A DNA stretch of 64,000 nucleotides, from positions 124,001 through 188,000 of IMG/VR virus record IMGVR_UViG_3300028654_000001; one strand, given 5' to 3'. This document shows, piece by piece, positions 2,743-56,177 of the stretch (positions within the stretch are counted from its first letter, which is position 1; the number at the start of each line of letters is the position of its first letter). The notes beneath the pieces were generated by a model that was not told the origin of the DNA, did no database searches, and was given only the letters and a program-made list of their open reading frames with translations. The translations under genes and the position numbers were made by a program.

Positions 2743-3459
2743 TCAGTAGTGAAGCTTCTCGTTGAGCTCGTTGATGAGCTCCTGCTCACGAGGTGAGATA
2801 GTTACCCGTAGTCGGATACCAACCCGCCTTGCTGTTTCGAGTATTGCTGCATCAGTCATGGTCATAAAGTTGGTGGCCTGATCTTCAATCAAGGTCCAGT
2901 TAGGGGTGTTGTTGAGGAACCTGAATGCTATCAGCGTACAGTACTCGGCCTTCTCAGTGGTACTGAGGCTACTTTGAGTCTCAGGGATCTCTTTTGTACC
3001 AGGCTCTCGAGAGGGTCTGATCTCATCCCAACACTCTTCAATTGGTTCGTCAGCCATCAGAAAACACCTCGAGTCACTTGAGCTATGGGATCTTTCAACA
3101 GTAGTCATTTTTTTGTATCCAGGTCGTGACATTTCTCTTACCAGAGCCTCGTCGGAGTACCTCAGCTTCTGAGTCCTCCACGAGTCCTCAACTACGCGTT
3201 GACCTGCAGGCCTCCACCGAGCAGGTGTGTCAGGGTCACCATGGATGTCTTCAACCTCTGGAGGGATCAGGCACTTGGTGAAGAGCCAGTCCAAACAGAA
3301 CTCACATACACTGAACTTGTACTTAGTACAATCATCAAGGGCACCCGCTCCGTTCCCAGGTGTCGAGTGAAAGCTCCCTTGGACCTCAGCGTCGACAAGT
3401 CCTACTCGTGGAGTGTTCGGTTCTAGTTGTAATGAGTGTCCACATACATTACAGGTCAC
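2743..3459 (-). CDS. hypothetical, CxxC zinc-finger N-terminus plus internal IESYW-type tag (possible fusion)
   Basis: ORF track; CNVC...CEFC; internal MADEPIEECWDEIRP from 3057. Confidence 0.75.
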   Translation of the reverse strand: MTCNVCGHSLQLEPNTPRVGLVDAEVQGSFHSTPGNGAGALDDCTKYKFSVCEFCLDWLFTKCLIPPEVEDIHGDPDTPARWRPAGQRVVEDSWRTQKLRYSDEALVREMSRPGYKKMTTVERSHSSSDSRCFLMADEPIEECWDEIRPSREPGTKEIPETQSSLSTTEKAEYCTLIAFRFLNNTPNWTLIEDQATNFMTMTDAAILETARRVGIRLRVTISPREQELINELNEKLHY

Positions 3460-3826
3460 TTAGTAGCCTTTCAAATCGGGTTGGTCGAGAACCTCTATAA
3501 GTCTCAGGACTCTCGTTTAGATAGGTATCGAGAATATCCAGAGCTAGATCACTCCAGTACTTCCTAGAGTTCAACTTCCTCATGGTCGGATCAGGGTTGG
3601 CCCTGTTGAACTTCACTCCAGTACTCTTGCACCCCCAGATACCAGTGTAGGTGACAATATTCGGGTCAGATTTCATATTGCGAAGATAGGCGACAAACCA
3701 AACTCTCTGAGGGTTTCGACCTAAGTCTACTACGATAGTCACCTTGTACAGCTTGGAGGCCTCAGAATCTCTGACGATAATATCCCGAACTTGTTGAATT
3801 CGTTGGTCTAGAACTTCAAGAGGCAT
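3449..3826 (-). CDS. hypothetical with C-terminal PTRFER tag
   Basis: Ends RPTRFERLLSDL; overlaps neighbours by a few nt. Confidence 0.85.
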   Translation of the reverse strand: MPLEVLDQRIQQVRDIIVRDSEASKLYKVTIVVDLGRNPQRVWFVAYLRNMKSDPNIVTYTGIWGCKSTGVKFNRANPDPTMRKLNSRKYWSDLALDILDTYLNESPETYRGSRPTRFERLLSDL

Positions 3827-4322
3827 CACTCTCGTCCTTGATGATCCGCTCGAATCGCGTGGGCCTGGACTCTACAGGTGGACTACCCGTAGCTCTAACT
3901 AAGTGAGCATGACGTAGATCCATATATAGATAGCTTGTTGGTCCACAGTTATCGCAATAACAAGGACCTATGGGTATAATGTAGTTCTCTGCACTCAAGG
4001 GAGTCTCAGTGAGGAATCCCATACCCATAAATGGTTGCAAGTCAGGTGACTCGCTAATCTCGTTCATCATGGTGGTAGACTCCGATTGGATACGCTCGAA
4101 GTCTTCATCAGTATACACTCCCGGATCAGTGGTATCTAATACGTTGGTGGTTACTTGGAAAGGTCCGCAGCGAGTAGTAACCTCCACACGACCCTCTTGA
4201 ACCGTTGAGACTCTTGTAGCCAATTGATTACAGATGCAGCAACGAACGGCGTACTTCTCAAGGAGTTCCTTGGTGGTGAGGATCATCAAGTCAATCATCC
4301 GGATATTGGTAGTAGCCGACAA
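3816..4322 (-). CDS. Cys-rich hypothetical with C-terminal PTRFER tag
   Basis: CCICN...CYCDNC; ends RPTRFERIIKDESDAS. Confidence 0.85.
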   Translation of the reverse strand: MSATTNIRMIDLMILTTKELLEKYAVRCCICNQLATRVSTVQEGRVEVTTRCGPFQVTTNVLDTTDPGVYTDEDFERIQSESTTMMNEISESPDLQPFMGMGFLTETPLSAENYIIPIGPCYCDNCGPTSYLYMDLRHAHLVRATGSPPVESRPTRFERIIKDESDAS

Positions 4323-4824
4323 TGTTGATCAACTTTTCAATGAACTTGTAGGCACCAACAATAACGTCATCACTTTGGCTCACACTCTCAGGGCCACTTA
4401 TCTGATGGTCATCGGTGAAAGTGGTGATCACCTTCTCAAGGGATCTGAGTTGAGCCAGGGTAAGAGACTTTCGCACTCGAGGAACATTAACCCCGAAGTC
4501 CATGGGTTCTAGATCAGAGTTAACAATCGGAATCCCGAGCTCACGAGCTCGTTTGACCTCCCTCTTGACCCCCGATGAGGATTCCCAGCCCGGGACAAGC
4601 ACTAGGAGGTCACAGGTCTCTAGTAGGTCCAGAGCTGCCTCCAACCAGAACTCGTAGTCCTGAGTGTCAGCAAAGGGGCTCCAGAACACGTTTGGACAGA
4701 CCGGTACCCAGCCCGCCTTAAGTACGTCGGAGATCACCAGTCGAGCCTTGGAGATGTTCTCCTCAATCTCATCAGCAGAGCCACTATAAGCACCGGAGAC
4801 GAAAGCACGTCCTTTTGTCTTCAT
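4291..4824 (-). CDS. DUF4406/DUF1937-like (nucleoside 2-deoxyribosyltransferase-fold) protein
   Basis: FVSGAYSG...CPN...W...CDLLVLVPGWESSSGVKREVKRARELGIPI, recognised from memory. Confidence 0.75.
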   Translation of the reverse strand: MKTKGRAFVSGAYSGSADEIEENISKARLVISDVLKAGWVPVCPNVFWSPFADTQDYEFWLEAALDLLETCDLLVLVPGWESSSGVKREVKRARELGIPIVNSDLEPMDFGVNVPRVRKSLTLAQLRSLEKVITTFTDDHQISGPESVSQSDDVIVGAYKFIEKLINIVGYYQYPDD

Positions 4825-4970
4825 AGATCACCGAGCTCCAATACTCATACATTCAGTCACTGAGACGTGTTCTATGGGCCAAAAGAGAATGACGGTAAGA
4901 GTAGCTCTATCACTCGCATTGTCAACTCCTGAGACGTAGGGGTTCGACTAGCTTAGCAGGGTACCCTACC

Positions 4971-5261
4971 TCAAGAAGCCTTGGCCCCTTCGAAGGGCTT
5001 CATCTCCTGGCACTTGGTAGCGATCGGGGGCAGGTTCGGAAGCTGAGTCTGACATGCTTGATAGAGAGTGTACGCAAGATTAGTGAGTTGAGCTAACGCA
5101 ATGACTTGCCCTTCACTCTCGGTTTTTCTGGATTGCCCTTTGATTAAACTTATGAGGTGTAGATAGTAGTTGATCGCATCATCCCCTCTGATGAAGACCC
5201 CACGCCAATCATCACCAAACCTCATGCCACCGGTCTCTGGTCGTTCCTGTTCATCATTCAT
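4971..5261 (-). CDS. hypothetical phage protein (MRFGDDWRGVFIRGDDA motif)
   Basis: 3' part of the track ORF; start chosen at the ATG coupled to the upstream stop. Confidence 0.7.
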   Translation of the reverse strand: MNDEQERPETGGMRFGDDWRGVFIRGDDAINYYLHLISLIKGQSRKTESEGQVIALAQLTNLAYTLYQACQTQLPNLPPIATKCQEMKPFEGAKAS

Positions 5262-5760
5262 TTTCATCATCCTCGAGTATGCGGTCAAAACGAGTAGGCC
5301 TGACCTGCTCGGTAGCAGAGAGTCCAACGTTGGTAGCCCTGCGAACCATAGGGGCAATCTCAAGCTCTTGGTACTGTAGTGCCTCGTAGACCCCAGTGTG
5401 GGTATCACAGAAGAAGGGACCTTGATCGAAGGACCAGGATTGAACCTCAGCCCCAAAACCCAAGTTTGGGATCTCCTCACCTATGGCGGCCAGCTCACGC
5501 TGAATCCAACTTACAGTACGTCTACCAATATCCTCCATAGTCAAGTGATCACTTCTGAAAATCTCTGAGGAGGTCATTCGCTGACGGCTTAGTGCGGCGG
5601 TCGGTGTCCAAGCAAACTTGGACAGCTCACCCATCTTGATTCGTAAAATCTGGATGTCGGGAGCGAGGTCTCGATACCTCCGAGTAGCCATGGCTCCGCA
5701 AACACTGCAATGAGGAGCTATATCAACGAGTAGGTTGTAGAGTGCAAAGGTGTCAGGCAT
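5254..5760 (-). CDS. Cys-rich hypothetical with C-terminal PTRFDR tag
   Basis: CSVCG; ends RPTRFDRILEDDENE; resembles the 3816-4322 architecture. Confidence 0.85.
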   Translation of the reverse strand: MPDTFALYNLLVDIAPHCSVCGAMATRRYRDLAPDIQILRIKMGELSKFAWTPTAALSRQRMTSSEIFRSDHLTMEDIGRRTVSWIQRELAAIGEEIPNLGFGAEVQSWSFDQGPFFCDTHTGVYEALQYQELEIAPMVRRATNVGLSATEQVRPTRFDRILEDDENE

Positions 5761-7161: not shown

Positions 7162-7169
7162 GTCACTCA

Positions 7170-7198
7170 ATACTACATATCGGGGGTTAGGATCTCAC
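7170..7198 (-). promoter_or_regulatory. class-I promoter motif
   Basis: GTGAGA-N17-TAGTAT, ATG 8 nt downstream. Confidence 0.75.
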
Positions 7199-7211
7199 TA
7201 CTTATTCTGGA

Positions 7212-7505
7212 TTAGGCCTCCCCGACAACCGACTTCCCACCAAAGATGTTGTCCCAGTTCTCCCGGTAGGCTCGACTGTTGACCAGGGGAGGTCTACCGA
7301 CGGGCTCCTCTGATATGATCCTGTGAAGAGGACCTTCAACCCTCTCAAGGTGGAGCTTGGCATCAAAAATACCACCAGGGACTGACTCCAAGTCCCGATA
7401 GAGCCTACCTGACTGGACCCCGTTCTCGTCAATATGAAGGGCCTTGCACCCACCCTCAATTTCTGGGCCTAAGACAACATAACCCTTGTCATCGTCATCT
7501 TTCAT
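7212..7505 (-). CDS. hypothetical protein
   Basis: ORF track; ends AYRENWDNIFGGK. Confidence 0.7.
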   Translation of the reverse strand: MKDDDDKGYVVLGPEIEGGCKALHIDENGVQSGRLYRDLESVPGGIFDAKLHLERVEGPLHRIISEEPVGRPPLVNSRAYRENWDNIFGGKSVVGEA

Positions 7506-7552
7506 TGGGATCCGCCACAACAACCCTACGTGAAACAAACAGAGTTGTCAAA

Positions 7553-7876
7553 TTACTTGACGAGTCGAAGTTTACGAGGTTGCTTGACTTCATTTACCCT
7601 CATCCTTCTCGGTCCCTCGTAGTCAGTGCAAACCTCGGAAGACTTCAGATCCCGTCTGACCCAAAGTTGATCAGCGGTGTTGACAGTAATCGATAAGACA
7701 TCGGTTTTATGAAACTTCCCATAGAAGCACCTCACTATGTGGTCCCTGAAGCACTTGCTAACCCAATGGAGGGCAAATTGCTCCTCATCTGGCGACTTAT
7801 CGATGCTCTTCTTAAGATCTTCACCTATGTTGACTCTATAGGGGTGGGGTCGCCACTTGCAGTCGTTGCAATTCAT
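7553..7876 (-). CDS. Cys-rich hypothetical ending in KLRLVK
   Basis: CNDC N-terminus; C-terminal LRLVK. Confidence 0.75.
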   Translation of the reverse strand: MNCNDCKWRPHPYRVNIGEDLKKSIDKSPDEEQFALHWVSKCFRDHIVRCFYGKFHKTDVLSITVNTADQLWVRRDLKSSEVCTDYEGPRRMRVNEVKQPRKLRLVK

Positions 7877-7885
7877 TTGGGTGAC

Positions 7886-8131
7886 TCAGGGCTCCTCGAA
7901 GATGTGGAGCTTGCCAACAGGAACGTCCTCACAACGCACCGTAGCCATCGTCTGGAGACTGGTACCCCAACCAGAGGTAGCGAAGCATATAGGTGCCCCA
8001 GGGTACTTCATGAAGGTAATGCTGTTAGGAGTCGGATTCCTTGACCTGTAGCTCAGGTAGGCCACTAGAATGGAAAGTGTCCCAACAATTACCAAACCAA
8101 CTATCAACTTTACTCTGAACATACTGATCAC
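7886..8131 (-). CDS. small membrane-anchored protein
   Basis: N-terminal hydrophobic helix LIVGLVIVGTLSILVAYL. Confidence 0.75.
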   Translation of the reverse strand: MISMFRVKLIVGLVIVGTLSILVAYLSYRSRNPTPNSITFMKYPGAPICFATSGWGTSLQTMATVRCEDVPVGKLHIFEEP

Positions 8132-8496
8132 ATCCCTAGGTTCTCCAACTCGAGTAAGATCTGGTCAGGCTCATTGGTTAACCTAGTGGCAGTTATACGC
8201 CTACGACTAAGACTCTGAAAGTAACTCCATAACGGACCTGAAGGTGTTTTACTTGCATCCGATCGTTTGATCATGAACAACATACCACAAGAGCACTTGA
8301 ACCATATCTCTTGTTCCACTACGGTGATTTCTCCGTGGCCTTGAAAACTATGGTTAGCAGCTGCACGCAATAAAATAGGAATAGTGGTGAAGGTTGGTAT
8401 CCCAAGATTAGCCTCAGGCACCTTGGGGGATGCTGGTGGGAGTCGACCAGGACGGATCACCATCCACATAGATTCGATGTCATCGTCCTGAGTCAC
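8128..8496 (-). CDS. hypothetical with N-terminal IESYW-type tag
   Basis: MTQDDDIESMWMVIRP; H...CSC zinc-like motif. Confidence 0.85.
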   Translation of the reverse strand: MTQDDDIESMWMVIRPGRLPPASPKVPEANLGIPTFTTIPILLRAAANHSFQGHGEITVVEQEIWFKCSCGMLFMIKRSDASKTPSGPLWSYFQSLSRRRITATRLTNEPDQILLELENLGM

Positions 8497-8603
8497 TTAC
8501 CCCCCAAGTACTCGAGTACGCAGCATCTGTAGTGGTGCGGATCATACCCAGCTTGAAAGCTGAACTGCCTATGACAGTAAGTGTCCTGTACAAGATAGAT
8601 CAT
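8493..8603 (-). CDS. 36-aa micro-ORF
   Basis: Manual translation MIYLVQDTYCHRQFSFQAGYDPHHYRCCVLEYLGGK; stop overlaps the GTG of the next gene. Confidence 0.45.
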   Translation of the reverse strand: MIYLVQDTYCHRQFSFQAGYDPHHYRCCVLEYLGGK

Positions 8604-8653
8604 TAGGCCTATACCTATGCCTAGTATCAAGAATACAAAAGGGTAGTACTTTA

Positions 8654-9430
8654 TCATGGATCAACCCCAATCGCGTGCTTGTGCATCGGAGACAGGTTAT
8701 CTTCCTGCTTGCATCGGTTGCAAGATCCCATTGTGAGAACAGCTTTGGTCAACTCCTCGTTAGAGCTATCGACGGTTCCAATCGGGTAACAGAGTCGACT
8801 CTCACCCGCGACAACTACCCCCTCATGAGTCACTGACGGAGTACAGAACCCTGCTAGCCCAATACATGCTCTAGCCCTCAAGAGCTTGATTGCCATAGGC
8901 ATCGACTTGTACGAACGAGTGAGGGATCTGAGGTTGAAGCTACTGGGGGCCGAGCGAGGACTTAATCCCTTGGGGTCAAACGTGGGTCTTGAGGCTCGAC
9001 CGATGGTGGACAAGACTTGAAGTTTGTCCACGTAGGTTATCTTCGGGTGCTCTAACTTCAGAGGCTTGCGTGGGTAGTACCGATCGTCATTAGTGACTTG
9101 AAAAAGGACATGCTTCCAATCATCTCGAAGGAGAGCATCCCTGAGTTCCTTGTTCTCTAGCCAGAGCCCATGAGTCAGAATACTAAGGATCCAACCTCTC
9201 CTAACTACCTGTGAAGCCATCTCGACGAGAAGTGGGTTATCCGTGCACTCCCCTCCTGATAGCATCATCATCACCGGGATCCCAGCCTTGATAACCTCAC
9301 ACTCTGCTCGTTCGGTGAAATCGAGTGCTCGCATGAACGTGTTCATATCCATGTGCTCTCCGGAAGGGAGAGCATCCTCGAGACAGTGGGTGCAGCCCAT
9401 CGAGCAGGAATTTGTTATTTTGATGATCAT
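8654..9430 (-). CDS. radical SAM domain protein
   Basis: CSMGCTHC (CxxxCxxC), LSGGECT motif, C-terminal C...CNRC cluster. Confidence 0.9.
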   Translation of the reverse strand: MIIKITNSCSMGCTHCLEDALPSGEHMDMNTFMRALDFTERAECEVIKAGIPVMMMLSGGECTDNPLLVEMASQVVRRGWILSILTHGLWLENKELRDALLRDDWKHVLFQVTNDDRYYPRKPLKLEHPKITYVDKLQVLSTIGRASRPTFDPKGLSPRSAPSSFNLRSLTRSYKSMPMAIKLLRARACIGLAGFCTPSVTHEGVVVAGESRLCYPIGTVDSSNEELTKAVLTMGSCNRCKQEDNLSPMHKHAIGVDP

Positions 9431-9435
9431 TTAGT

Positions 9436-9464
9436 GGTTTACAGGATAACCCCACCCGTTTCAA
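9436..9464 (-). promoter_or_regulatory. sigma70-like promoter, leaderless variant
   Basis: TTGAAA-N17-TAAACC, ATG 5 nt downstream. Confidence 0.6.
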
Positions 9465-9473
9465 CAAGCAAGA

Positions 9474-9821
9474 TCATTCGGTTTTAGTGGTTGAACGCCT
9501 CTTAACCATATCGATTCTGGCCTGAAGATTGTCAACAAGGGACTTCAACTCTGGGAAGGGGTCAGCTGTCTGCTCTTCTTCGGGAACCGTGGCCATGAAT
9601 CGATTGTACTCTATCACGTGGCCTTCAGTAATGTAGCCTATATCCCCCCAACTCTTGCTCGTTTCCTCCAAGTAGTCACATGCCAATTTGACCGGATGGA
9701 TCATGCTTGCAGCTATCTTGTTGCGCCCCCTTGAAGTCTTTATATTTGACTTAAGAATCTCTAGTGTACGTGGGTTTTTGTACCTAGATAGAAAGGCCTG
9801 AATCGCGACTTCTTGATTCAT
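9474..9821 (-). CDS. hypothetical protein
   Basis: ORF track; CGGTG-TACTCA 8 nt upstream of the ATG. Confidence 0.75.
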   Translation of the reverse strand: MNQEVAIQAFLSRYKNPRTLEILKSNIKTSRGRNKIAASMIHPVKLACDYLEETSKSWGDIGYITEGHVIEYNRFMATVPEEEQTADPFPELKSLVDNLQARIDMVKRRSTTKTE

Positions 9822-9845
9822 GTTAGGGGTGAGTACACCGATTGA

Positions 9846-10370
9846 TTAGTCGTTCTCGAGTATCCGTTCAAAGCGAGTCGGCCTTGGTCCAGTATACGAT
9901 TCAGAAAGCCTATTCGCCGGCATGTTATCAATCAACCGTCTCAAGTACCCCATCATAAACCCTACGGGTACGGTCATCTCGGATCCATTGAATTGGGGAG
10001 TGAGTTCCATGAGCGAGTAGCTTAGTGAAAGTACCCAAGTCAGGATTAGGTCTCCGGTGGTCGGGTGTTCAACATAGGTTGGCAAGGTGTGTTGCACCAC
10101 ATAGAGGGTGCCGTCCTGAGCTCCTGGGTTGTTAGACCACAGGACTAGATCTGCTAACAGACTCTGAACTTGATCTGCTATCACAAACCTTCTACCCTCG
10201 AAGGTCAGGCGGGGTAGCCGAAGGATATTCCCAATAGCGATCTCATGAGTAGTGGATACAGTTAGGTTTCGATTGATCCAAAGCACCTCATGGACCGTAG
10301 ATTCACGGGTGAAGTCTGCCACTTCCGAGTTCTGGCCACTGAGCACCCATAAACGGAGATTGACGGGCAC
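9846..10370 (-). CDS. hypothetical with C-terminal PTRFER tag
   Basis: Ends RPTRFERILEND. Confidence 0.85.
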   Translation of the reverse strand: MPVNLRLWVLSGQNSEVADFTRESTVHEVLWINRNLTVSTTHEIAIGNILRLPRLTFEGRRFVIADQVQSLLADLVLWSNNPGAQDGTLYVVQHTLPTYVEHPTTGDLILTWVLSLSYSLMELTPQFNGSEMTVPVGFMMGYLRRLIDNMPANRLSESYTGPRPTRFERILEND

Positions 10371-10808
10371 TCAATTACTCTTCCCACCGTCAATGACTCT
10401 GAAGGTTCGATGACGGATCCATTCCCTCTTACTCCCGAGTGGAGCTCTCCTGAACTCCCCATTACAGACATGACACTTACTGAACCACGACCTGGTCTTC
10501 AGTGATAGGGTATTGGTCAGAACCCCTTTGCATCCAGGCGCCGGACAGGGAGGCCCCACGATCTCAAAGAGAGGGTAAGGAACCTTCTCGGTGAACTCCT
10601 CCCCGTTGATCGCCGTGTCCGTGTAGTAGAACTCTTGTCCGCACTGAATACACGCATCCAACCTAACTAGCTTGAAGCTCTTTGGGTCTCTTCGAACCAA
10701 CAGAAGTCCAGTTTTACACACTGGGCATACCGATCGAAAGGCACTATCCCCATCAGCTCTTTCGAGCTCAGCGTGGACAACTCTGATGTGAGTCTTGGAA
10801 GGGTTCAC
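10371..10808 (-). CDS. double zinc-ribbon protein ending in FRVIDGGK
   Basis: CPVC..CIQC and CPAPGC..CHVC. Confidence 0.8.
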   Translation of the reverse strand: MNPSKTHIRVVHAELERADGDSAFRSVCPVCKTGLLLVRRDPKSFKLVRLDACIQCGQEFYYTDTAINGEEFTEKVPYPLFEIVGPPCPAPGCKGVLTNTLSLKTRSWFSKCHVCNGEFRRAPLGSKREWIRHRTFRVIDGGKSN

Positions 10809-10922
10809 TTGAGGGACCTCAGGAACTCGTAGATCTTAGTCAACAAGTCCATCTTGACACGGAAGGGTGGTGTTCGGGTTCTGGATGGGCATTAAAGCCC
10901 ACTACACCGAAACCCAATCGGA

Positions 10923-11174
10923 TCAGTTGGGCTTAGCTTCCTCGAATTGAGCGAGGACGGTGGTCAGCTCTCGAAGAGTCCCGTGAGCTTCTTCTGGGGC
11001 CTCTGGGGTTATCCAGTCCTGTAGTGCGGACAGGTGAAGCTTAGCCTTTTCGACTAGGGCTTGCCTGCGGGAACCTTCAGCCTGCGAGGCTTCCATGAGG
11101 AGTTTACTAGCTACATCGGCGTGGACTTCGGCTCTAGCTTGGGCAGGATCAATTGGATTTCTTGTCTGGGTCAT
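10923..11174 (-). CDS. hypothetical helical protein
   Basis: ORF track; 8 nt from the upstream gene. Confidence 0.7.
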   Translation of the reverse strand: MTQTRNPIDPAQARAEVHADVASKLLMEASQAEGSRRQALVEKAKLHLSALQDWITPEAPEEAHGTLRELTTVLAQFEEAKPN

Positions 11175-11182
11175 GATCAGGA

Positions 11183-11635
11183 TTACGTAGCAGCTTCAGT
11201 TTCCTCACCATCTTCGTTTGGTTTTGGTAGTTGTTCCGAGGACACCAACTCCTCAGCAAGATCACTCATGACCTCTTCACCAGTGATATAGGGTCTTCCG
11301 GTGATGTGTCCGATCAGTTCGGCCACAACTACGGCATCAGGGGTTCTAAGACCTAGTTTCTCCCCTACATAGGCCCAATGTAAGAGTTGACCGTTGTTCG
11401 TTATCAAAGCCGAGGGGCGTGGTTCTTGATTCAGTGACGTCACCAACCAACACTTCTCCGAAACCCCCATCAAGTCCTTAGCCCCATCACTAAAACTCGT
11501 GAGTTCCGTGAACATCAAGTCATATTTTGTACCATTTCCCGGACAGTAACTAACAAATGTACAAGCCCCACTTACCTCCTTGCGCTTGATTCCAGACTCA
11601 ACAGTAGGCATAGTTCGAACATCTAATAGTGGCAT
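11183..11635 (-). CDS. hypothetical protein
   Basis: ORF track; TTGAGT-N17-TAAACT lies 8 nt upstream of the ATG. Confidence 0.8.
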   Translation of the reverse strand: MPLLDVRTMPTVESGIKRKEVSGACTFVSYCPGNGTKYDLMFTELTSFSDGAKDLMGVSEKCWLVTSLNQEPRPSALITNNGQLLHWAYVGEKLGLRTPDAVVVAELIGHITGRPYITGEEVMSDLAEELVSSEQLPKPNEDGEETEAAT

Positions 11636-11772
11636 AACTCAAAAGTTTAGCATAAGTCGGTACTTAACTCAAGATCTCTGTGAGTCTATGGTGTACAAGA
11701 TCAGCGGAAATCTTGTCATCCCATCTGAATCTGCCACAGGTGACATAAACCTTTTATAGAAATACACCGAGT

Positions 11773-12420: not shown

Positions 12421-12426
12421 GGCCCC

Positions 12427-12705
12427 ATGAACGATCTAACCCTCATTGCTCGAGTTGTGGAACGTGTGGCGGCCGCCAACATGTGGGGTGTTGATGTCCG
12501 AGCCATCAACACGTGGCTGAAGAAGAATGTCACCTTTCCTGCGAAGGTCCTCCAGAACCGGGCAAACGTGGTCGACATCGGGACCGATGTGAAGAACGAC
12601 CTTGGGCCATACTCGGAGGCTTTCCAGAAGGCTTTCCCGGGAACCAAGGTGACTCAACCTGGGATGAAGAACTACCTACGCGTCGTGTTCCCCGTCAACA
12701 GGTGA
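12427..12705 (+). CDS. hypothetical with N-terminal MxDLxIIxRVxxRV tag
   Basis: MNDLTLIARVVERVAAA. Confidence 0.8.
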   Translation: MNDLTLIARVVERVAAANMWGVDVRAINTWLKKNVTFPAKVLQNRANVVDIGTDVKNDLGPYSEAFQKAFPGTKVTQPGMKNYLRVVFPVNR

Positions 12706-12711
12706 GTCTGA

Positions 12712-14500: not shown

Positions 14501-14508
14501 AGTAAGTC

Positions 14509-14907: not shown

Positions 14908-14953
14908 GATAGCTCCTTGAGATTACAACCAGGTAATAAGTTCAGTAAGGAAG

Positions 14954-15034
14954 TTATGGGTTTTTGACCGCTTCGGTACCGGTCATTCCATCGAGGGAGA
15001 GCCTCGATTCCCAGCTGTCTTTCCAGCCCGTCAC
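14954..15034 (-). CDS. 26-aa micro-ORF under a class-I promoter
   Basis: GTG 6 nt after the -10 element; MTGWKDSWESRLSLDGMTGTEAVKNP. Confidence 0.35.
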   Translation of the reverse strand: MTGWKDSWESRLSLDGMTGTEAVKNP

Positions 15035-15040
15035 GCCTTA

Positions 15041-46709: not shown

Positions 46710-47192
46710 TCAGATCACTTCTTCTCGGTGAAACCTATCTGGGGGCCATTGCTTGGACTTGGTGTGGTCCTCCTCGCACTCCTCAAGAAGTAGATCCCTT
46801 ATGCGTGAATCAGCAAAGTACAGACTAGTATCCCAGGGTGGTGTTCCTTCCAGGTAATTAGTCCACTGAGATTTCGAGACTGGATCGAACTTTCCCTCAA
46901 TCCAATACTCCACCTCGTCCCCTTCGAAGCTGGTATGCTCCACCACCTGTCCAGTCCAGATATAGAGCCCGTCAGAGGGGATCTGAACCTCCATATCTTC
47001 TTCGAAGTGGTCCTGCATGTACCCATCTTCATAAAGGAAGTCGAGCCCTGGTCCGATATACAACAAAACCTTGGGCATCCCAAATACGATCACAACAAGG
47101 GCCTTCTCAGGAGGCAAATCTCTCCTACCCTTGTAAACCAAACCTCTCACCGAGATGAAAGGCTCTGTTTCATCAGAGGGGTAGAAACTCAA
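46710..47192 (-). CDS. hypothetical with variant C-terminal tag
   Basis: Ends PPDRFHREEVI. Confidence 0.8.
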   Translation of the reverse strand: MSFYPSDETEPFISVRGLVYKGRRDLPPEKALVVIVFGMPKVLLYIGPGLDFLYEDGYMQDHFEEDMEVQIPSDGLYIWTGQVVEHTSFEGDEVEYWIEGKFDPVSKSQWTNYLEGTPPWDTSLYFADSRIRDLLLEECEEDHTKSKQWPPDRFHREEVI

Positions 47193-47631
47193 TGGGTACG
47201 CTCAAATCCCTTCCGTGAGTAGTGAGCTCCACGCCCATGAAACCCATCTCGTGGATGGTCGCCAAAGGCAGCAATTTCTTCAAGTTGTCAAGGCTTTTTT
47301 GGATTGAGGTCCTAGTACTCTCTGTGAGTCCTTCAACCAAAGGGCTGATAATAGAGAACTCCATTATTGGAAAGGGGTGGTCATTGTCAGCTTCAACCCG
47401 AATCTTGTTCAAGACACCAATCTGATCACCCCCAACGAATACCCTAGCCTTGGGGACACATCGAGCAGGCTTACCCGAGGGTGTGTCAGTCAGTAAGCTT
47501 CCCTGTTGAACAAATACCAACAGGTCATCTTCGGATACCTCTACTACCTGTTGAAACACTTTTGATAACTGAGCTTCTGTACGTCGTACAACGAACACTT
47601 TATCAAACTCTCCGACTTCGATTGTTGGCAT
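47173..47631 (-). CDS. hypothetical protein
   Basis: ORF track. Confidence 0.75.
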   Translation of the reverse strand: MPTIEVGEFDKVFVVRRTEAQLSKVFQQVVEVSEDDLLVFVQQGSLLTDTPSGKPARCVPKARVFVGGDQIGVLNKIRVEADNDHPFPIMEFSIISPLVEGLTESTRTSIQKSLDNLKKLLPLATIHEMGFMGVELTTHGRDLSVPIEFLPL

Positions 47632-47659: not shown

Positions 47660-47953
47660 TCAGCTAGGTCGATCCATAATGGTTGCAATGTTTTCTGGCC
47701 CGAACTCTACAAGCTCTCCGCACTCAGGAGCCCCTACGAAGAATGAAACGTTATCCAGGGTACCTTTGAATCGAGGTCCTGGTAGAACTTCCATAACCTT
47801 AACCCACATCCGGTCACAGCTCCCCGATGGGTAGTGGAAGTGAAGCTTGACGTAATCCCCTACTTGTAGTGCCTCCCGTTCAGTACGCTGAACAATATGG
47901 AAGGTTGTAGGATACTTCTGATTCATCTCTTCAACATTGGCTAGCGTGTACAT
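47660..47953 (-). CDS. DUF2314-like protein
   Basis: GDYVKLHF...DRMWVKV...GTLDN...VEFGPENI (from memory). Confidence 0.65.
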   Translation of the reverse strand: MYTLANVEEMNQKYPTTFHIVQRTEREALQVGDYVKLHFHYPSGSCDRMWVKVMEVLPGPRFKGTLDNVSFFVGAPECGELVEFGPENIATIMDRPS

Positions 47954-48393
47954 TAGATCACTGGCTCCCTCTCGAATCGAGTTGGGTGGGTGATGTCAAG
48001 AGACTTCAAATTGACTGGAGATACGAGCTTGTATCTCGGGTTGAACTCTGGAAGGTTCATCTCCACGTGGTGTCCACGGAAGTAGATGGTAACGTGCCAT
48101 ATCAAATGAGAGTGGAGGTCATCACCCAGGATGATCTGAACATTATCCTCGAAGGGGAATTCCAATACCCAGGAAGTGGCCATCCGATTCCTTTTTGGAA
48201 TTAGACGGTACAGCCCTGGCTCTAACCGATCTACTCGGCGTCCCTCAATATACTCTTCCTTAATGTGGCACTTGACAACTGCGTAGTTTGGGACATCAAT
48301 GACCAGAGCCTCTTGGTACTTAAGAGGGTTGAACTCTAGCTTGAACTTCATGCATGTGATGTCCTTGCCAGTCCGGTTGAACTTGATGATCAT
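47953..48393 (-). CDS. hypothetical with C-terminal PTRFER tag
   Basis: Ends HPTRFEREPVI; TTGACA-N17-TATGGT 8 nt upstream. Confidence 0.8.
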   Translation of the reverse strand: MIIKFNRTGKDITCMKFKLEFNPLKYQEALVIDVPNYAVVKCHIKEEYIEGRRVDRLEPGLYRLIPKRNRMATSWVLEFPFEDNVQIILGDDLHSHLIWHVTIYFRGHHVEMNLPEFNPRYKLVSPVNLKSLDITHPTRFEREPVI

Positions 48394-48496
48394 CCACAAG
48401 AACCATAAACCACGGTAATCTAGCTGTCAACGAATAACCAGGTTGTATCGGCCGTATAGCCTATTGTGAACTCCTCAAGATACGTTGGGTAACCAT

Positions 48497-48847
48497 TCAG
48501 TCAAGCCATCCTCGCTTTCGGCGGTAGGCCTTCTGAACGCTTCCGTATACCACCGTAAAGGTCCACTCATATGAAGAGAAAATACCCCCTGTGATGAACA
48601 GCCACCAGACCCAGCGGTGCAGCTTGTACCACCTGGGTCTGAACACAACACAGGTCTCTCCCTCGTAGTCAGATGCAGAAGCTCCGTCGACTGGTTCCTC
48701 GAGCAAGTACAAGGCCTCTTCAGAGATAGAGTAACCTTCGATCTTGGTCGGATTGATGTGGTCACATACACCGCCCTTGGGTGGCTCCTTCCCTGGTTTA
48801 CGCGGCGGGCGGAGACCTTCCCAGTAGGACTCGATGTCATCAGTCAT
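48497..48847 (-). CDS. membrane protein with N-terminal IESYW tag
   Basis: MTDDIESYWEGLRP; hydrophobic WVWWLFITGGIFSSY. Confidence 0.85.
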   Translation of the reverse strand: MTDDIESYWEGLRPPRKPGKEPPKGGVCDHINPTKIEGYSISEEALYLLEEPVDGASASDYEGETCVVFRPRWYKLHRWVWWLFITGGIFSSYEWTFTVVYGSVQKAYRRKRGWLD

Positions 48848-49182
48848 CAAAGCACATCCGGCCACATACGGGAAATTTCGTCAAGACGATTGAGCACCTC
48901 CTTGTTTTCATGAGGTTTATCGAAGTCATAATCAGTCAAGATTCCCTGAAAGTGCTCTCTGATTGTCCCGAAGCTGACTTCAACTCCAAAAGTGTTAAAT
49001 ACCGTAGAGATGTACTCCCGGATCTTCAAGTCAGCCGCAAAGGTGGGTACCAAAACCCTTCGGCTAATCCTAATCAAAGCCTTCAGCAAGACCATGGAAT
49101 TGATAGACTTTTCGACTATCAACTGAGGACGAACCACCTCCCAATAGGACTCGATGCTATCAGTCCTTGATCCTGTAGCCAT
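48847..49182 (-). CDS. hypothetical with N-terminal IESYW tag
   Basis: MATGSRTDSIESYWEVVRP. Confidence 0.85.
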   Translation of the reverse strand: MATGSRTDSIESYWEVVRPQLIVEKSINSMVLLKALIRISRRVLVPTFAADLKIREYISTVFNTFGVEVSFGTIREHFQGILTDYDFDKPHENKEVLNRLDEISRMWPDVL

Positions 49183-49258
49183 CTAACCAACCTAAATCTT
49201 TGTAATTAGGGCGAACCACTTCCCAATAGGACTCGATGCTGTCTTCAGGTTTAGTCAC
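49160..49258 (-). CDS. 32-aa tag-only micro-protein
   Basis: GTG 1 nt after the upstream stop; MTKPEDSIESYWEVVRPNYKDLGWLDGYRIKD. Confidence 0.6.
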   Translation of the reverse strand: MTKPEDSIESYWEVVRPNYKDLGWLDGYRIKD

Positions 49259-50735: not shown

Positions 50736-51213
50736 GATCATCCTCAGAATTAGACAAGAGATCACTCATCTCTTGAAAGTAACTCAAGCGTGGATCTTCA
50801 GGCCCAATGTTGAGGTCTTGGACTCTACTATCAATCACGTCTATCAACCTGGTGAAGTTGTAGCGGATCCCAGCTGAGTTCAAGAGATTACGTAATCGAA
50901 CCGTTGTATATACAAGCTCTCGAAAGAGAGACCCGTTTGATCTCTCTGTCCCGCTTAAGTGGTGCGAGTAGGGTGGGTCTGTAACGACGGAAGTGAAGGT
51001 TACGTTTGATTCTTCAACTTCAACAGGGGAGTCATCACCATAATCAATGGTGTAACGAGTCACGTAGGGGGTTGACTCCTCATCGGACTCAACTGGGTCT
51101 TCTAAAGCAACCACGTCGACAATAGGCACATTGGTTAGGGTACTCAGATCCCGCTGGGGTCGAAGTCCTTCCCAAAAGGACTCGATGTCATCAGTGTCAG
51201 TTGAGGTACCCAT
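50722..51213 (-). CDS. hypothetical with N-terminal IESYW tag
   Basis: MGTSTDTDDIESFWEGLRP. Confidence 0.85.
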   Translation of the reverse strand: MGTSTDTDDIESFWEGLRPQRDLSTLTNVPIVDVVALEDPVESDEESTPYVTRYTIDYGDDSPVEVEESNVTFTSVVTDPPYSHHLSGTERSNGSLFRELVYTTVRLRNLLNSAGIRYNFTRLIDVIDSRVQDLNIGPEDPRLSYFQEMSDLLSNSEDDHARR

Positions 51214-51297: not shown

Positions 51298-51660
51298 ATG
51301 CCAACCGAGGAAAAGAATCTTGAGCTGACACTCTTAGGAATCAAGGTGGCTCGAAGGCCATTTGATCAGTCACGACCCGGGCTCTATTGGTACACAACCC
51401 GTGGCGGCTACAACATGAATATTTTCAAGAATCTGGCTAATATTGACAACCAGAAACCCTATGAGTGGTATTGCAGTACCGTTGGTTGCTCCTTCACAGC
51501 TAGTGGTAAAGAGTCATCGTTAGATGAAGCTATTAAAGAAGCTCATGTGCGTCTTGCTAACCACATTCTAGAGAAGTCCAATGTGGAGCAGACTGCCATA
51601 AACTTTCTCCCGAATAGTACCTCACGACCAACTCGATTTGAACGAGAACCGGTACTGTAG
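51298..51660 (+). CDS. hypothetical with C-terminal PTRFER tag
   Basis: Ends SRPTRFEREPVL; TTGACT-N18-TAACTA-N6-ATG. Confidence 0.85.
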   Translation: MPTEEKNLELTLLGIKVARRPFDQSRPGLYWYTTRGGYNMNIFKNLANIDNQKPYEWYCSTVGCSFTASGKESSLDEAIKEAHVRLANHILEKSNVEQTAINFLPNSTSRPTRFEREPVL

Positions 51661-53269: not shown

Positions 53270-53881
53270 CTACCCATACAAAACTCTACCACCGTGTTTT
53301 CCACGAAGGATTCTGTTGGTTAGCGTACTTGACGGGATGCCAAGTTTCCGCCCCCACCTTGCCGCTGTCATTCGGACCCCTTGGAAAGTAATCAAGCATG
53401 ACTTGCGACGGTTATTTGCGCTCTCTTCCATTGTTACCCATAAGGTATTTTTCTTAGTATACCCCTTAGTGACATTCTTGCGTCCCAGTCGCTTACCTTC
53501 GGGCCTTTTTCCCATGTCTTCGATGAAATTTTCGAATTGGTACCACCTCCTGCAGACAGTGATTCCAACCCCACCGTACCGAGGCCAGTTAGCATCGTTC
53601 TGGTTTCTGCACCGTGATAGCATCGAAGACCAGACTTTGTACTCAGGCGCCCTTTTACGTCGGGAGTACCCATGGCGTACTGGTCTACCTCTACCTTCTT
53701 TTAAAAGGCATCCGCATGACCGGCTACGGTTAGACTTGATCGAAGATTCCTGAACGTAACGGACAGTACCGCATTGGCACCGGCACCGAACAAACTTACG
53801 ATTCCGACCGCTCAGTGACTTGACACAAGTTGGCCCAATGACTTTCCAACGAGATATCGTCATTCCTCTTCTTTGTGGCAA
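53270..53881 (-). CDS. phage HNH-type homing-endonuclease-like protein
   Basis: VRCRCQCG...SRSCGC; EYKVWSSMLSRC...YGGVGITVC..W..FENFIEDMG.RP; C-terminal TxAxWxRKLGI HTH. Confidence 0.85.
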   Translation of the reverse strand: MPQRRGMTISRWKVIGPTCVKSLSGRNRKFVRCRCQCGTVRYVQESSIKSNRSRSCGCLLKEGRGRPVRHGYSRRKRAPEYKVWSSMLSRCRNQNDANWPRYGGVGITVCRRWYQFENFIEDMGKRPEGKRLGRKNVTKGYTKKNTLWVTMEESANNRRKSCLITFQGVRMTAARWGRKLGIPSSTLTNRILRGKHGGRVLYG

Positions 53882-54936
53882 GCTTGGTAAGCCAAGATAT
53901 TGAGCTTGTTAGTGACATTCTTCAGGTTAGTCTCAGCCTTTTTCCTGGCTAAGTGGCGCTTAGTAGCCTCCCCAACGAAGATCATATCCATCTCAGCAAA
54001 ATAGATCTTACAGGTCCAGGTGTCATCTTTTTGCTGTTCAGTCAGCCGTATGCCAACACCATCGAAGGTAGCCTTGTCGGCAACCGTCTGAACCATTTGG
54101 TAACCCAACCAGCTCAGGTAGATGGGTTTGATCACCAAAGGCTTCACCTTGACTGGTTTCTTAGCCTTGACTGGTTTCTTAGCCTTGACTGGCTTAATCT
54201 TGGCACTGCTTGGTTGGACCACCGCCGATGCGGGATTCTTCTTGGCTTTCTTCTTCTTTTCCTGCACAGGCTTCCAGGCTTGACCAAAGTACGGACTGTC
54301 CTCAGTCAAACTAACACTATCTCGGGTAGGTCTCTCAAACAACGGGCGGTGCTGAGATAGCTGAAACCTGATGTAGTGAACCTCATCATCGGATGCTGGC
54401 ATCAACCCAGCCTCCTTCAGTCTCGTATGGACCTCCACCAGTGACAGAGTTTCATTTCCGATCACTCGCTGAATATTCCGTATGAAGTTCGACGGACTTG
54501 CCGGATTGCCTCCAATGCTCTCCTCAGGTTTAGTAACAGGCAGCTCGGGTTCAATGTCCAGTACCCTAGGGTTATCCTCAACCTCTATGGTTACGGTGTC
54601 TTGTGGAGCAGAAACCAAAACAAGAGTTGGAGTCTGAGCTTGAAGCTCTTCTGTTTCGGGGTTTGAGTCCATTGAGTTGATCATCTGTTGAATCTCTTTC
54701 CGTCTTTTACGCTTGGCTTCGGCATCCTCGATCCGAAGCCGCTCAGCTTCCAAGCTAGCAGTTTCATGGTCTTCAAATAGGACATCTCTACTAGCAACGA
54801 AACAATAGCGCTCTTTGACCAACTCTACAACTACTGGATTACGTGGGACAACTTTCAGCTCTTCCCCATCCGTACCATCCCGGAGGATGTTCACCTGGTC
54901 GACTGTCCCTGGTCCCGCGAGGTAACAAGATTGCAT
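53860..54936 (-). CDS. multi-domain protein with winged-helix and K/A/P-rich linker
   Basis: LSLVEVHTRLKEAGL; KPVKAK x3. Confidence 0.8.
   Translation of the reverse strand: MQSCYLAGPGTVDQVNILRDGTDGEELKVVPRNPVVVELVKERYCFVASRDVLFEDHETASLEAERLRIEDAEAKRKRRKEIQQMINSMDSNPETEELQAQTPTLVLVSAPQDTVTIEVEDNPRVLDIEPELPVTKPEESIGGNPASPSNFIRNIQRVIGNETLSLVEVHTRLKEAGLMPASDDEVHYIRFQLSQHRPLFERPTRDSVSLTEDSPYFGQAWKPVQEKKKKAKKNPASAVVQPSSAKIKPVKAKKPVKAKKPVKVKPLVIKPIYLSWLGYQMVQTVADKATFDGVGIRLTEQQKDDTWTCKIYFAEMDMIFVGEATKRHLARKKAETNLKNVTNKLNILAYQACHKEEE
54147..54195 (-). repeat. 18-nt tandem coding repeat (KPVKAK)
   Basis: CCTTGACTGGTTTCTTAG x2.7 on the + strand. Confidence 0.9.
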
Positions 54937-54971: not shown

Positions 54972-55153
54972 CTATTTTGTTGAAATAGTTTGTGGCCCCA
55001 ACCTACCTACAAGGGTTGAATTATACCCAGTTTTCTCAACATTGGGTACCCAAAATCGAACAAGTGGCCTACTAGGGTTATTCCAATCTTGTGGTGAAAA
55101 TTGAAATAAGGATCTATCAGGAAAGGTGTTGCTACAACGCCCTGAAATAAGAC

Positions 55154-55465
55154 CTACCGACCTGGTGGCCTGAGTCTTTTTGGACCCAAGGTACCAAGAA
55201 ACCCCTTGAGGTCTTCTCGCTCTGCTTCGGTTACCCTGAGTTGACCCGAACTGACTAGATTCGCCGCTCCAGGATCTAACCCTAGTCGTTTGTGGGTCCA
55301 CTCAGCCCAATCACGCTGCCTCTTCGTCAGCTTCTGGAACTTTCCTGCAAGGAGATCCCCCAACATCCGGGAGAAAGCTGCCTCTTCTTCCCCCTCAAGC
55401 TTTTCGCTCTCAACAAGGTCCTCCAACAGTTTCAAGTCCGGAAGGGTGACTTTGAACTCTAACAT
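55154..55465 (-). CDS. hypothetical protein
   Basis: GGTG-TATTAC-N6-ATG; LTKRQRDWAE motif. Confidence 0.75.
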   Translation of the reverse strand: MLEFKVTLPDLKLLEDLVESEKLEGEEEAAFSRMLGDLLAGKFQKLTKRQRDWAEWTHKRLGLDPGAANLVSSGQLRVTEAEREDLKGFLGTLGPKRLRPPGR

Positions 55466-55555
55466 CTGAAAGTAATACACCCCAACTCAAGTCTGGAATT
55501 CAATACTTAGTAGATTTTGGCAGGTTGTCCAACCATCCCCGGTGTACTGAGAGTC

Positions 55556-55756
55556 ATGCCATCAGATACCAAGAAAAACAAGCACGAGCATACGTTCAAA
55601 GATGGAGCAACCTTGAATTTAACTGCTAGTTCCAAGGGTCTGAAGATTGGTTGGCAGGAAGTTGGTAAGAGTAAGCATCCTGCAGTTACCTTGACTTGGA
55701 AGACAGTGAATCGTCTGAGTCGTCACCGCATGAAGCCAAAGACCGTTGTGGGGTGA
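55556..55756 (+). CDS. small basic hypothetical
   Basis: CCGGTG-TACTGA-N5-ATG. Confidence 0.7.
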   Translation: MPSDTKKNKHEHTFKDGATLNLTASSKGLKIGWQEVGKSKHPAVTLTWKTVNRLSRHRMKPKTVVG

Positions 55757-55757
55757 T

Positions 55758-56177
55758 ATGTCCGATATCATCTGGATGCCCGTCACCAGAATTCTATCAA
55801 CAGACCTTATGGTGTTGGGGGTAAAGTATCTCTTCGATTGGGATCGAAGGGTCTGGGTAGAGCATCAAGATGGTTGCTATGATGGTATACAATGGCACAC
55901 CATGTTCCTCTGTCGCGAAGTCGACGGTAAGAGTCAGTTCTGGCTTGAGGTTGTCCCAGCTACCGCCAAGTTACTGAGTGACTGTGGTCTTCGTGATGAG
56001 CATCTACTCAGAGCTATTGAACCAATACCACCTTGGCCGTCCAAGGTGGTGATGTTCTACATGGAGACCCAAGTAGCCGCTGCTCTGGTTGAATACCAAC
56101 CCGTGAAGAGTGTCTCGCCCTCTTGGTGGTTCAAGGATCTCCCTCCAACTCGGTTCGAGCGCGAAGATGTTATCTAG
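55758..56177 (+). CDS. hypothetical with C-terminal PTRFER tag
   Basis: Ends PPTRFEREDVI. Confidence 0.85.
   Translation: MSDIIWMPVTRILSTDLMVLGVKYLFDWDRRVWVEHQDGCYDGIQWHTMFLCREVDGKSQFWLEVVPATAKLLSDCGLRDEHLLRAIEPIPPWPSKVVMFYMETQVAAALVEYQPVKSVSPSWWFKDLPPTRFEREDVI

Follow-up and report, generated by a model that had tools for sequence, protein, structure and literature searches.

Dozens of unrelated proteins encoded by a 512,571-bp rhizosphere megaphage (IMGVR_UViG_3300028654_000001 / Ga0265322_10000002) and its relatives end in the same short peptide (core TRFER), which behaves like a portable address label or docking handle; its receptor was not identified. The initial annotation, made on a window of 64,000 nucleotides of this genome (positions 124,001 to 188,000 of the record), described a C-terminal PTRFER tag on eight proteins. 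That observation is confirmed, and the phenomenon is larger than first described: in this genome and its relatives we found 136 distinct tagged proteins in about 78 body families. The tail exists in two forms, that is, ...TRFER-[IV]L-x-acidic (type 1) and ...TRFER-E-[DPE]-V-[IL]-COOH (type 2), the latter always exactly 4 residues from the end. A second, N-terminal tag (DDIESYWEGLRP) exists on other proteins.

A six-frame scan of the window finds P[TD]RF[EDH]R exactly 8 times; all 8 matches are at the genes first described and lie 4–9 residues before a stop, after 114–164 open codons, at the end of ORFs of 120–174 aa. In 300 first-order Markov simulations of the window the mean number of matches is 0.01 and the maximum is 1; the DNA pattern for the first four tails occurs 4 times, compared with 0 in 100 dinucleotide shuffles. 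Four of the genes carry type 1 tails, all on the minus strand: 3449..3829 (126 aa; tail RPTRFERLLSDL encoded at 3452–3487, stop TAA), with an orthologue in another locus (L004) that keeps the tail; 3816..4322 (168 aa, with CxxC motifs; tail RPTRFERIIKDESDAS encoded at 3819–3866, stop TGA); 5254..5760 (168 aa; tail RPTRFDRILEDDENE encoded at 5257–5301, stop TGA); and 9846..10370 (174 aa; tail RPTRFERILEND encoded at 9849–9884, stop TAA), a 74%-identical orthologue of which, on a 145-kb relative, keeps the tail. The other four carry type 2 tails: 46710..47192 (minus strand, 160 aa) has the degenerate tail PPDRFHREEVI encoded at 46713–46745 (stop TGA), a variant kept by its orthologue, although untagged paralogues exist in other genomes; 47953..48399 (minus strand, 148 aa) ends in HPTRFEREPVI encoded at 47956–47988 (stop TAA); 51298..51660 (plus strand, 120 aa) ends in RPTRFEREPVL encoded at 51625–51657 (stop TAG); and 55746..56177 (plus strand, 143 aa) ends in PPTRFEREDVI encoded at 56142–56174 (stop TAG). 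Pfam and PHROGs searches with the 8 proteins gave nothing useful.

Several details of the initial annotation require correction. The longest ORFs start at 3829, 48399, and 55746 instead of 3826, 48393, and 55758 (which start codon is used was not decided). The genes at 3816–4322 and 5254–5760 are distant paralogues, so the eight proteins described as otherwise unrelated really represent about seven families. The eight are also a small sample: at least 34 tagged proteins are encoded by the roughly 157 kb of this genome that we examined (about 31% of the genome, in a sample that is biased toward tagged regions). Finally, the invariant core is TRFER; the preceding Pro is frequent but not obligatory.

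Two outcomes had been named in advance as fatal to the idea of a shared tag, namely that the carriers are full-length homologues of one family or that the motif is not enriched at C-termini; neither was observed. The bodies range from 50 to 384 aa, and the approximately 78 families include a RecA-core ATPase, capsid-protein-derived proteins, proteins with hydrophobic N-termini, and zinc-ribbon proteins. Using an HMM of the tail, 123 of 129 hits of at least 10 bits in the DNA of the clade lie within 12 aa of a stop; in control DNA that had been selected with the same DNA pattern, 3 of 89 do. Chance matches to the same DNA pattern in cellular genomes are internal, almost never terminal: about 65 chance hits in 185,579 genomes and about 55 in metagenomes are internal. 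When a tail profile was used to search 1.84 billion proteins, 10 hits were obtained with E ≤ 0.001; nine of these end at the C-terminus, and in the tenth (protein P0041) the match reaches residue 72 of 73 and the sequence ends in the full tail. A search with the tail using a protein language model gave no lead.

The tail is selected at the level of the peptide. In 97 unique tails, all 4 Pro, all 6 Arg, both Phe, and both Glu codons are used, and all three stop codons follow; the synonymous variation first described in the window is confirmed. Pairs of proteins with 28% body identity keep 82% tail identity. In the RecA-core ATPase family the last 18 residues are nearly invariant down to 38% body identity, and two further families each keep their own tail variant. 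The tail is also modular: one paralogue family carries both tail types, and the tail is present or absent among paralogues.

The sequence context suggests that the tail is exposed. Pro and Glu are enriched in the 20 residues that precede it; in the AlphaFold2 model of the ATPase, the core of the protein has pLDDT values around 90, but the last 25 residues have values of 50–60 and almost no secondary structure. All 64 type 2 tails end exactly 4 residues after FER, which suggests that the free carboxyl end is read; type 1 tails do not have a fixed distance to the end, and some copies are internal, 20–65 residues from the end.

The tag is restricted to this lineage in the databases searched, with one exception. 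The hits in IMG/VR come only from this clade, and none of 50,697 GenBank phage records contains it (tblastn with a tail gave no match; megablast against GenBank phages also gave none). Outside the clade, the tag occurs only in two integrated, satellite-like islands of one bacterial MAG (MFD01476.bin.3.99); all 5 hits in that MAG are located in the islands, and its host genes do not carry the type 2 tail. The islands encode VapE-like and P4 cII-like proteins and are next to host FeoAB, CoaBC, and YebC genes; one island protein ends in DDKFPF, similar to an SSB tail. A look-alike search with CoaBC was uninformative for the taxonomy of the host. Comparison of the CRISPR spacers of the window with all of the collected loci, including the islands, gave only self matches; no RNA sequencing run was listed. 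The tails are encoded at the 3′ ends of closely packed genes, some overlapping the next start.

A possible link to the phage head is provided by two tagged families that contain N-arm/E-loop and P-domain/spine-helix segments of the phage G/Tunturi_5 type HK97 capsid protein. However, these pieces are fragments and are permuted, and the AlphaFold2 model of the capsid-derived family was too poor to use (mean pLDDT 42; no fold search was run). In one alignment (A4), the tail of one capsid-derived family lines up with the first A-domain strand of true capsid proteins, suggesting homology with that strand or with the ERRFD spine-helix motif; the tail HMM does not score capsid proteins, so we retain this only as a weak lead. 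A search for a canonical capsid gene in the source genome returned only other phages and leaves the presence of such a gene undecided. The RecA-core ATPase and the proteins with hydrophobic N-termini are not obvious head components, and the tail-fibre-like protein encoded at 40453–41979 is untagged.

No receptor was found. Among 80 proteins of the window scanned with Pfam, none has a TPR, PDZ, FHA, or protease domain; because about 69% of the genome was not seen, this result does not settle whether the phage encodes a TPR or PDZ receptor. A classical AAA ATPase (Cdc48/p97-like; L009:7122-8321, where L009 is the locus label) is located inside the most tag-dense cluster and was considered as the receptor; the candidate is weak because its N-domain is of a type that is widespread in phages that lack the tag.

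The initial annotation interpreted the tag as a phage-wide docking or sorting code that routes diverse effectors to one receptor; this interpretation is partly supported. Our data establish that a portable short linear motif, that is, a flexible Pro/Glu-rich linker, an invariant T-R-F-E-R core, and one of two endings (a hydrophobic pair followed by acidic residues, or E-[D/P/E]-V-[I/L] with the free carboxyl end), has been attached to about 78 unrelated protein families of one megaphage lineage, on both strands and across the genome and clade, and is kept by selection on the peptide. They do not establish that the tag docks to one receptor, that the carriers are effectors (several look like DNA-metabolism or head-related proteins), or that it is purely a phage code, given its use by the two islands. 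We infer that the tail works in trans, as a handle that tethers these proteins to one common, lineage-specific partner; we favor this explanation with moderate confidence, and consider a docking or sorting tag of some kind to be likely. Our preferred version, which is also inferred and more tentative, is that the partner is encoded by the phage and belongs to a phage-built assembly, most likely the procapsid or its packaged protein load; in this view, the satellite-like islands in a candidate host copy the tag to get their own proteins to the same place.

The main alternative, which we consider less likely but possible, is that the tail binds a conserved host machine (e.g., a replisome component, a chaperone, or the N-domain of a protease or unfoldase), so that any mobile element living in that host can use it to place its proteins there. 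Two unrelated kinds of element, the megaphage clade and the integrated islands, share only the tail, and this sharing fits a host hub equally well; the tagging of a RecA-core ATPase and the SSB-like end of one island protein, which shows that these elements use hub-type tails, are also consistent with it. However, the host genes of the MAG lack the type 2 tail, the absence of the tag from other phages in IMG/VR and GenBank is odd for a conserved host hub, and the sequence matches no bacterial hub motif of which we are aware. A degradation signal or timer, in which the C-terminal tail and the separate N-terminal tag are degrons read by a host or phage AAA+ protease and give many phage proteins a limited lifetime, is unlikely: the terminal position and hydrophobic end of type 2 tails, the occurrence of both N- and C-terminal tag classes (which resembles the N- and C-terminal recognition motifs of ClpX), and the AAA ATPase in the tag-dense cluster speak for it, but six to ten near-invariant residues with family-specific conserved flanks are more than degrons usually need, some copies are internal, and the N-domain of that ATPase is not specific to tagged phages.

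We regard as very unlikely a role in cis, with the tail as a strand, helix, or oligomerization segment that packs on its own body or on a neighboring subunit and is inherited from a common ancestor, possibly a capsid-protein segment. The family-specific sub-variants and alignment A4 speak for such a role; however, the bodies have different folds, the tail is unstructured in the one good model, the tail HMM does not recognize capsid proteins, and the tail is gained and lost among paralogues. The possibility that the conserved stretch is a DNA or RNA element at gene ends (a terminator, the ribosome-binding site of the next gene, or a recombination site) and that the peptide is a by-product is suggested by the location of the tails in closely packed genes but is refuted by the codon data: the peptide is invariant despite free synonymous variation, including CGN/AGR switches for Arg, and any of the three stop codons can follow.

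Shared terminal peptides that sort proteins have precedents, including signal peptides. In encapsulin cargo loading, a short C-terminal peptide after a flexible linker marks unrelated proteins for an HK97-fold shell, and heterologous proteins fused to the peptide are loaded (PMC8346489, PMC11866011); the megaphage tag shares the C-terminal position, the linker, and the otherwise unrelated carriers. It differs in sequence (no GSL-type motif is present) and in having dozens of carriers per genome instead of one to a few. Two tagged proteins contain capsid-protein fragments but no intact shell gene is adjacent to the carriers, an observation that leaves the expected proximity of cargo and shell genes unsettled; binding has not been shown, and loading was not tested. 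For the T4 capsid targeting sequence and the packaged or ejected proteins of giant phages (phiKZ, SPN3US), a shared terminal peptide sends several unrelated phage proteins into the prohead, and giant phage heads hold around 50 proteins (PMC3012670, PMC7411985, PMC10052503). The T4 signal is a roughly 10-residue N-terminal peptide that is removed by the prohead protease after Glu at an (L/I)-x-E site; the main tag described here is C-terminal, no cleavage of it is known, and its carriers include non-structural types. We recognized no T4- or phiKZ-type protease site next to the tag, although the sequences were inspected only by eye and no proteomic data were available.

Clamp-binding motifs (QL[SD]LF), the SSB C-terminal tail (DDDIPF), and the ClpX-tethering tail of SspB (LRVVK) are also short terminal peptides on flexible tethers by which many different client proteins bind one hub; the consensus of the megaphage tag ([P/R]-T-R-F-E-R followed by IL..acidic or EDVI) does not match these motifs, and its carriers are far more numerous and mostly ORFans. 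The ends of the tails (VI/VL or acidic) also do not match the C-terminal degrons exemplified by ssrA (LAA) and MuA (RRKKAI). In sortase- and exosortase-type sorting signals (LPXTG, PEP-CTERM, GlyGly-CTERM) the motif is followed by a transmembrane helix and a basic cluster; here, only 4–9 mostly acidic or short hydrophobic residues follow the core. The type 2 tails share with TPR-clamp ligands (the EEVD tails of Hsp70/Hsp90), PDZ ligands, and PTS1 a fixed distance to the free carboxyl end, and recognition of that end is likely; type 1 tails do not have this fixed distance. Small proteins of integrated islands that share only a C-terminal peptide with proteins of a phage are exemplified by SaPI1 CpmB, which copies the capsid-binding C-terminus of the 80-alpha scaffold; neither a helper relationship nor capsid binding is shown here.

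A tag shared by about 78 unrelated families, with at least 34 carriers in a third of one phage genome, has not been described as far as we could find, and a full-text search for the motif gave nothing. A more far-reaching possibility, which our evidence does not rule out but which we consider doubtful, is that this lineage runs a linear, transplantable protein-sorting code, with the C-terminal TRFER tag in two dialects and a mirror-like N-terminal DDIESYWEGLRP tag, that would direct a sizeable share of the phage's proteins into a phage-built structure, either the giant procapsid or another compartment; integrated satellite-like elements of the host would have copied the code to smuggle in their own proteins, and the code would be a phage counterpart of signals such as PTS1 or an NLS. 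If the tag is a docking code, it provides a handle on the function of a large block of megaphage ‘dark matter’ genes, a direct way to fish for the hub by peptide pull-down or a co-folding screen, and a small, transplantable tag for loading or recruiting proteins. The shared use of the tag by integrated islands also points to a candidate host and to possible satellites of a megaphage.

The eight ORFs exist as described in the initial annotation, that is, as genes on both strands whose products end in a shared PTRFER tag, and the observation holds; it is statistically overwhelming and much broader than first reported. A six-frame scan of the window for P[TD]RF[EDH]R finds 8 matches in 64 kb, and every one of these lies 4-9 residues before a stop codon, at the end of 114-164 open codons. 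First-order Markov simulations of the window give 0.01 matches on average; for the DNA pattern of the first four tails, shuffled sequences give 0 matches as compared with 4 observed. In the codon alignment, the Pro, Thr, Arg, Phe and Glu codons all differ between copies, including CGN/AGG switches, and the downstream DNA is unrelated; the conserved object is therefore the peptide, not the DNA. The bodies of the eight proteins have no Pfam family and no significant mutual BLAST similarity, except for a weak link between 3816-4322 and 5254-5760 that proves to be a real, distant paralogy once relatives are added. Two dialects are visible: the tails in the 3.4-10.4 kb cluster read RPTRF(E/D)R-[IL][IL]-x-acidic (type 1), whereas those in the 46-56 kb cluster read PTRFER-E-[P/D/E]-V-[I/L]-stop (type 2).

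The tagged protein at 9846-10370 is encoded by IMGVR_UViG_3300028654_000001, a 512,571-bp viral contig (also recorded as Ga0265322_10000002), and a 74%-identical orthologue is located on a 145-kb relative. The DNA is found in rhizosphere and soil metagenomes; no GenBank phage matches at the DNA level. The window is mostly small ORFans on the minus strand, with few recognizable domains (Macro, GNAT, a superinfection-exclusion GP17-like protein, a ProQ-C-like domain, a radical-SAM enzyme, a SASA esterase and a tail-fibre-like N-terminus). A CRISPR array at 284-2502, directly upstream of the first cluster of tagged genes, has 28 identical 36-nt repeats (CTGGGGATCCTTGATTGGATCCCCGTTCATTGAAAC) with unique spacers of about 35-40 nt, plus two degenerate repeats; among the loci compared, the spacers matched only the same genome. 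Two further groups of proteins in the window share N-terminal motifs: a paralogue set at 11773-12420, 12427-12705, 45061-45399 and 45406-45864 (with a member also at 7946-8464 of locus L026) has an N-terminus of the form M-[N/D]-D-L-x-[I/L]-I-[A/T/S]-[R/Q]-V-[V/A]-[R/K/E]-R-V, and three tandem paralogues of 134-141 aa at 27749-28153, 29088-29513 and 29519-29923 share an N-terminal QMT-x-[R/K]-P-x-ESGY motif. In addition, a 358-aa protein (53860-54936) has a Lys-rich KAKKPV repeat that is histone-H1-like in composition, and a small protein (32315-32590) consists largely of Asp/Glu runs; both coincide with short tandem DNA repeats (at 54147-54192 and 32326-32409, respectively).

To determine how widely the tag occurs, we first ran degenerate DNA patterns for the two tail types over 2.9 million viral contigs. 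These returned 22 and 24 stretches; all 22 type-2 stretches come from the source genome and six related contigs, and the type-1 pattern adds a few hits on other contigs. In those loci the peptide is again terminal. The initial annotation had named a lack of enrichment at C-termini as grounds for abandoning its proposal. With an HMM built from these tails, in clade DNA, 129 ORFs score at least 10 bits, of which 123 have the hit within 12 residues of the stop, whereas in control DNA (871 kb of cellular and other sequence that was fetched because it contains the same DNA pattern) only 3 of 89 hits are terminal. Other searches agree. The type-2 DNA pattern identifies 70 loci in 185,579 species genomes, about the chance number, and all are internal matches inside ordinary genes except two loci. 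In 241 million metagenome records, the same pattern identifies 43 terminal copies, all on contigs of 47-53% GC; about 55 further matches are on contigs of 31-73% GC (nearly all above 55%), and all of these are internal or on negligible ORFs except L181, a clade tail whose ORF is cut by the contig start. A 32-column tail profile searched against 1.84 billion representative proteins gives 10 hits at E <= 0.001, all of them small ORFans whose sequences end in the tail (for one, P0041, the profile match reaches residue 72 of 73). A tblastn search with a tail against 50,697 GenBank phage records and a full-text literature search for the motif both returned nothing.

We collected 136 distinct tagged ORFs of 50-384 aa. 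These fall into 81 single-linkage families, of which about 78 remain after three chance hits from control loci are removed; the other outcome that had been named in advance as refuting the proposal, that the tagged proteins are full-length homologs of one family, was therefore not observed. The invariant core is [T/S]-R-F-[E/D]-[R/K]; Pro or Arg usually precedes it, and many type-1 tails extend upstream as Y-x-G-P-R-P, although these counts are partly biased by how the tails were found. The 64 unique type-2 tails always end exactly four residues after FER as E-[D/P/E]-V-[I/L]. Type-1 tails continue with [I/V]-L and then 2-9 mostly acidic residues; a few type-1 copies are internal, 20-65 residues from the end, and one protein has two copies. 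All four Pro, all six Arg, both Phe and both Glu codons are used, and all three stop codons follow. Pro and Glu are enriched in the 20 residues before the core (10.5% against 6.6% and 9.7% against 5.9%, respectively). The roughly 157 kb of the source genome that we examined, a sample that is biased toward tagged regions, encodes 34 distinct tagged proteins; in one stretch, about 9-10 of 17 consecutive genes carry a tail or a degenerate version of it.

The tail is under stronger constraint than the bodies. Across 63 homologous pairs, tail identity stays high while the body diverges: at body identities of 28%, 37% and 63%, the tail identities are 82%, 91% and 92%, respectively. One tagged family is a minimal RecA/RadB-type ATPase core, for which a profile search against PDB sequences matches RecA, RadB and Rad51 paralogues over profile positions 1-174. 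Its 14 members diverge to 38% identity, but the last 18 residues are almost invariant; AlphaFold2 models the core with pLDDT around 90, whereas the last 25 residues have pLDDT 50-60 and almost no secondary structure. Two other families each keep their own tail variant through 41-79% body identity. One paralogue family contains both type-1 and type-2 tails, and several tagged proteins have untagged paralogues that simply stop earlier (e.g., window gene 47173-47631). The tail therefore behaves as a separable module on a tether.

Most of the carriers are ORFans. The recognizable ones include the RecA-core ATPase, which is encoded next to an untagged ThyX (a TnpB/Cas12f-like transposon protein, with a PHROG transposase match and a Cas12f1-like TNB domain, is encoded nearby in the source genome, at 7669-9297 of locus L193), proteins with hydrophobic N-terminal segments, and many small proteins that begin with CxxC pairs. 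Two further tagged families (2331-3080 and 4197-5237 of L009, a locus of the source genome outside the window) contain pieces of an HK97-fold major capsid protein of the phage G (PDB 6wkk)/Tunturi_5 type: one has the N-arm/E-loop part (hhalign probability 99.1%), and the other has the C-terminal P-domain strands followed by the P-domain strand and spine helix, which is a permuted order (97.5%). No A-domain was recognized in these proteins. A related 485-kb GenBank phage has the normal full-length capsid protein and no tags nearby; we did not establish whether the source genome also has a normal capsid gene. The label of 'effectors' that the initial annotation gave to the carriers is therefore too narrow.

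The only cellular genome with terminal tags is a soil MAG labelled 'uncultured delta proteobacterium MFD01476.bin.3.99', in which five proteins end in PTRFERE[D/P/E]VI. These proteins are located in two islands of small ORFans (8350-20408 of locus L120 and 7167-19518 of locus L121) that carry a VapE-like primase/helicase domain protein, a P4 cII-like protein and a Mu-type transposase fragment, and that are embedded in 413-kb and 571-kb contigs next to FeoAB, CoaBC, YebC and a glycosyl hydrolase. One island protein (L120:13704-14168) ends in DDKFPF, like an SSB tail. The islands share nothing with the megaphage except the tail, but they do share two genes with another small tagged contig. This gives a candidate host and suggests satellite-like elements; however, a host-encoded receptor explains the distribution equally well.

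A second shared tag was found independently at the N-terminus of other proteins. At least 24 distinct proteins of the clade carry [D/E]-[D/S]-I-E-[S/E]-[Y/F]-W-[E/D]-x-[L/I/V]-R-P, and in 20 of them the motif begins within 3-15 residues of the first start codon. The window has 9 clear copies, seven on the minus strand at 8452-8481, 26518-26547, 27004-27033, 48809-48838, 49129-49158, 49211-49240 and 51160-51189, one on the plus strand at 58170-58199, and one that is internal, on the minus strand, at 57163-57192, plus one divergent copy at about 50717. None of the 24 proteins also has the C-terminal tag. Both tags have a hydrophobic face with i, i+3/i+4 spacing, an acidic outer end and an Arg-Pro at the end nearest the body, so they look like rough mirror images; we have no evidence as to whether they share a partner. 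In one 191-aa family (L009:8626-9201 and, in loci L036 and L042, 1507-2082 and 118-693), an internal type-1 C-tag is directly followed by an N-tag-like segment (RPTRFERILRENE-IWEDYRP...) in a single protein, which looks like a fusion of a C-tagged and an N-tagged protein.

The interpretation in the initial annotation, a docking or sorting code that routes many proteins to one receptor, is partly supported. Our analyses demonstrate selection on the peptide, its terminal position, its modularity, its flexible context and its restriction to this lineage; that the tail acts in trans as a docking or sorting handle for a common partner is inferred. A partner that co-evolves with the phage lineage is favored by the absence of the tag from all other phages searched and from the host-like MAG's own genes, by the satellite-like islands that, in this view, have copied it, and by the derivation of two carrier families from the capsid protein; these points are also compatible with procapsid loading. 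Precedents exist: T4 has a capsid targeting sequence, giant phages have protein-rich heads, and encapsulin cargo peptides bind an HK97-fold shell through a short C-terminal peptide on a linker.

However, the tagged RecA-core ATPase and the proteins with hydrophobic N-termini are not expected head contents, no protease site is evident on inspection by eye, and no receptor was found in the window. A single-domain classical AAA ATPase (L009:7122-8321; best PDB matches Cdc48/p97) with a 190-aa N-domain and a poly-acidic C-terminus is encoded within the most tag-dense gene cluster, but its N-domain type is common in phages without the tag. Docking to a host hub, a degron and a cis-acting structural element are rivals that our data do not exclude, whereas a nucleic acid signal is excluded. 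Shared terminal targeting or docking peptides are a familiar kind of device; the tag described here, although its receptor has not been identified, is to our knowledge undescribed, and the scale on which this lineage uses it is unusual for a phage.
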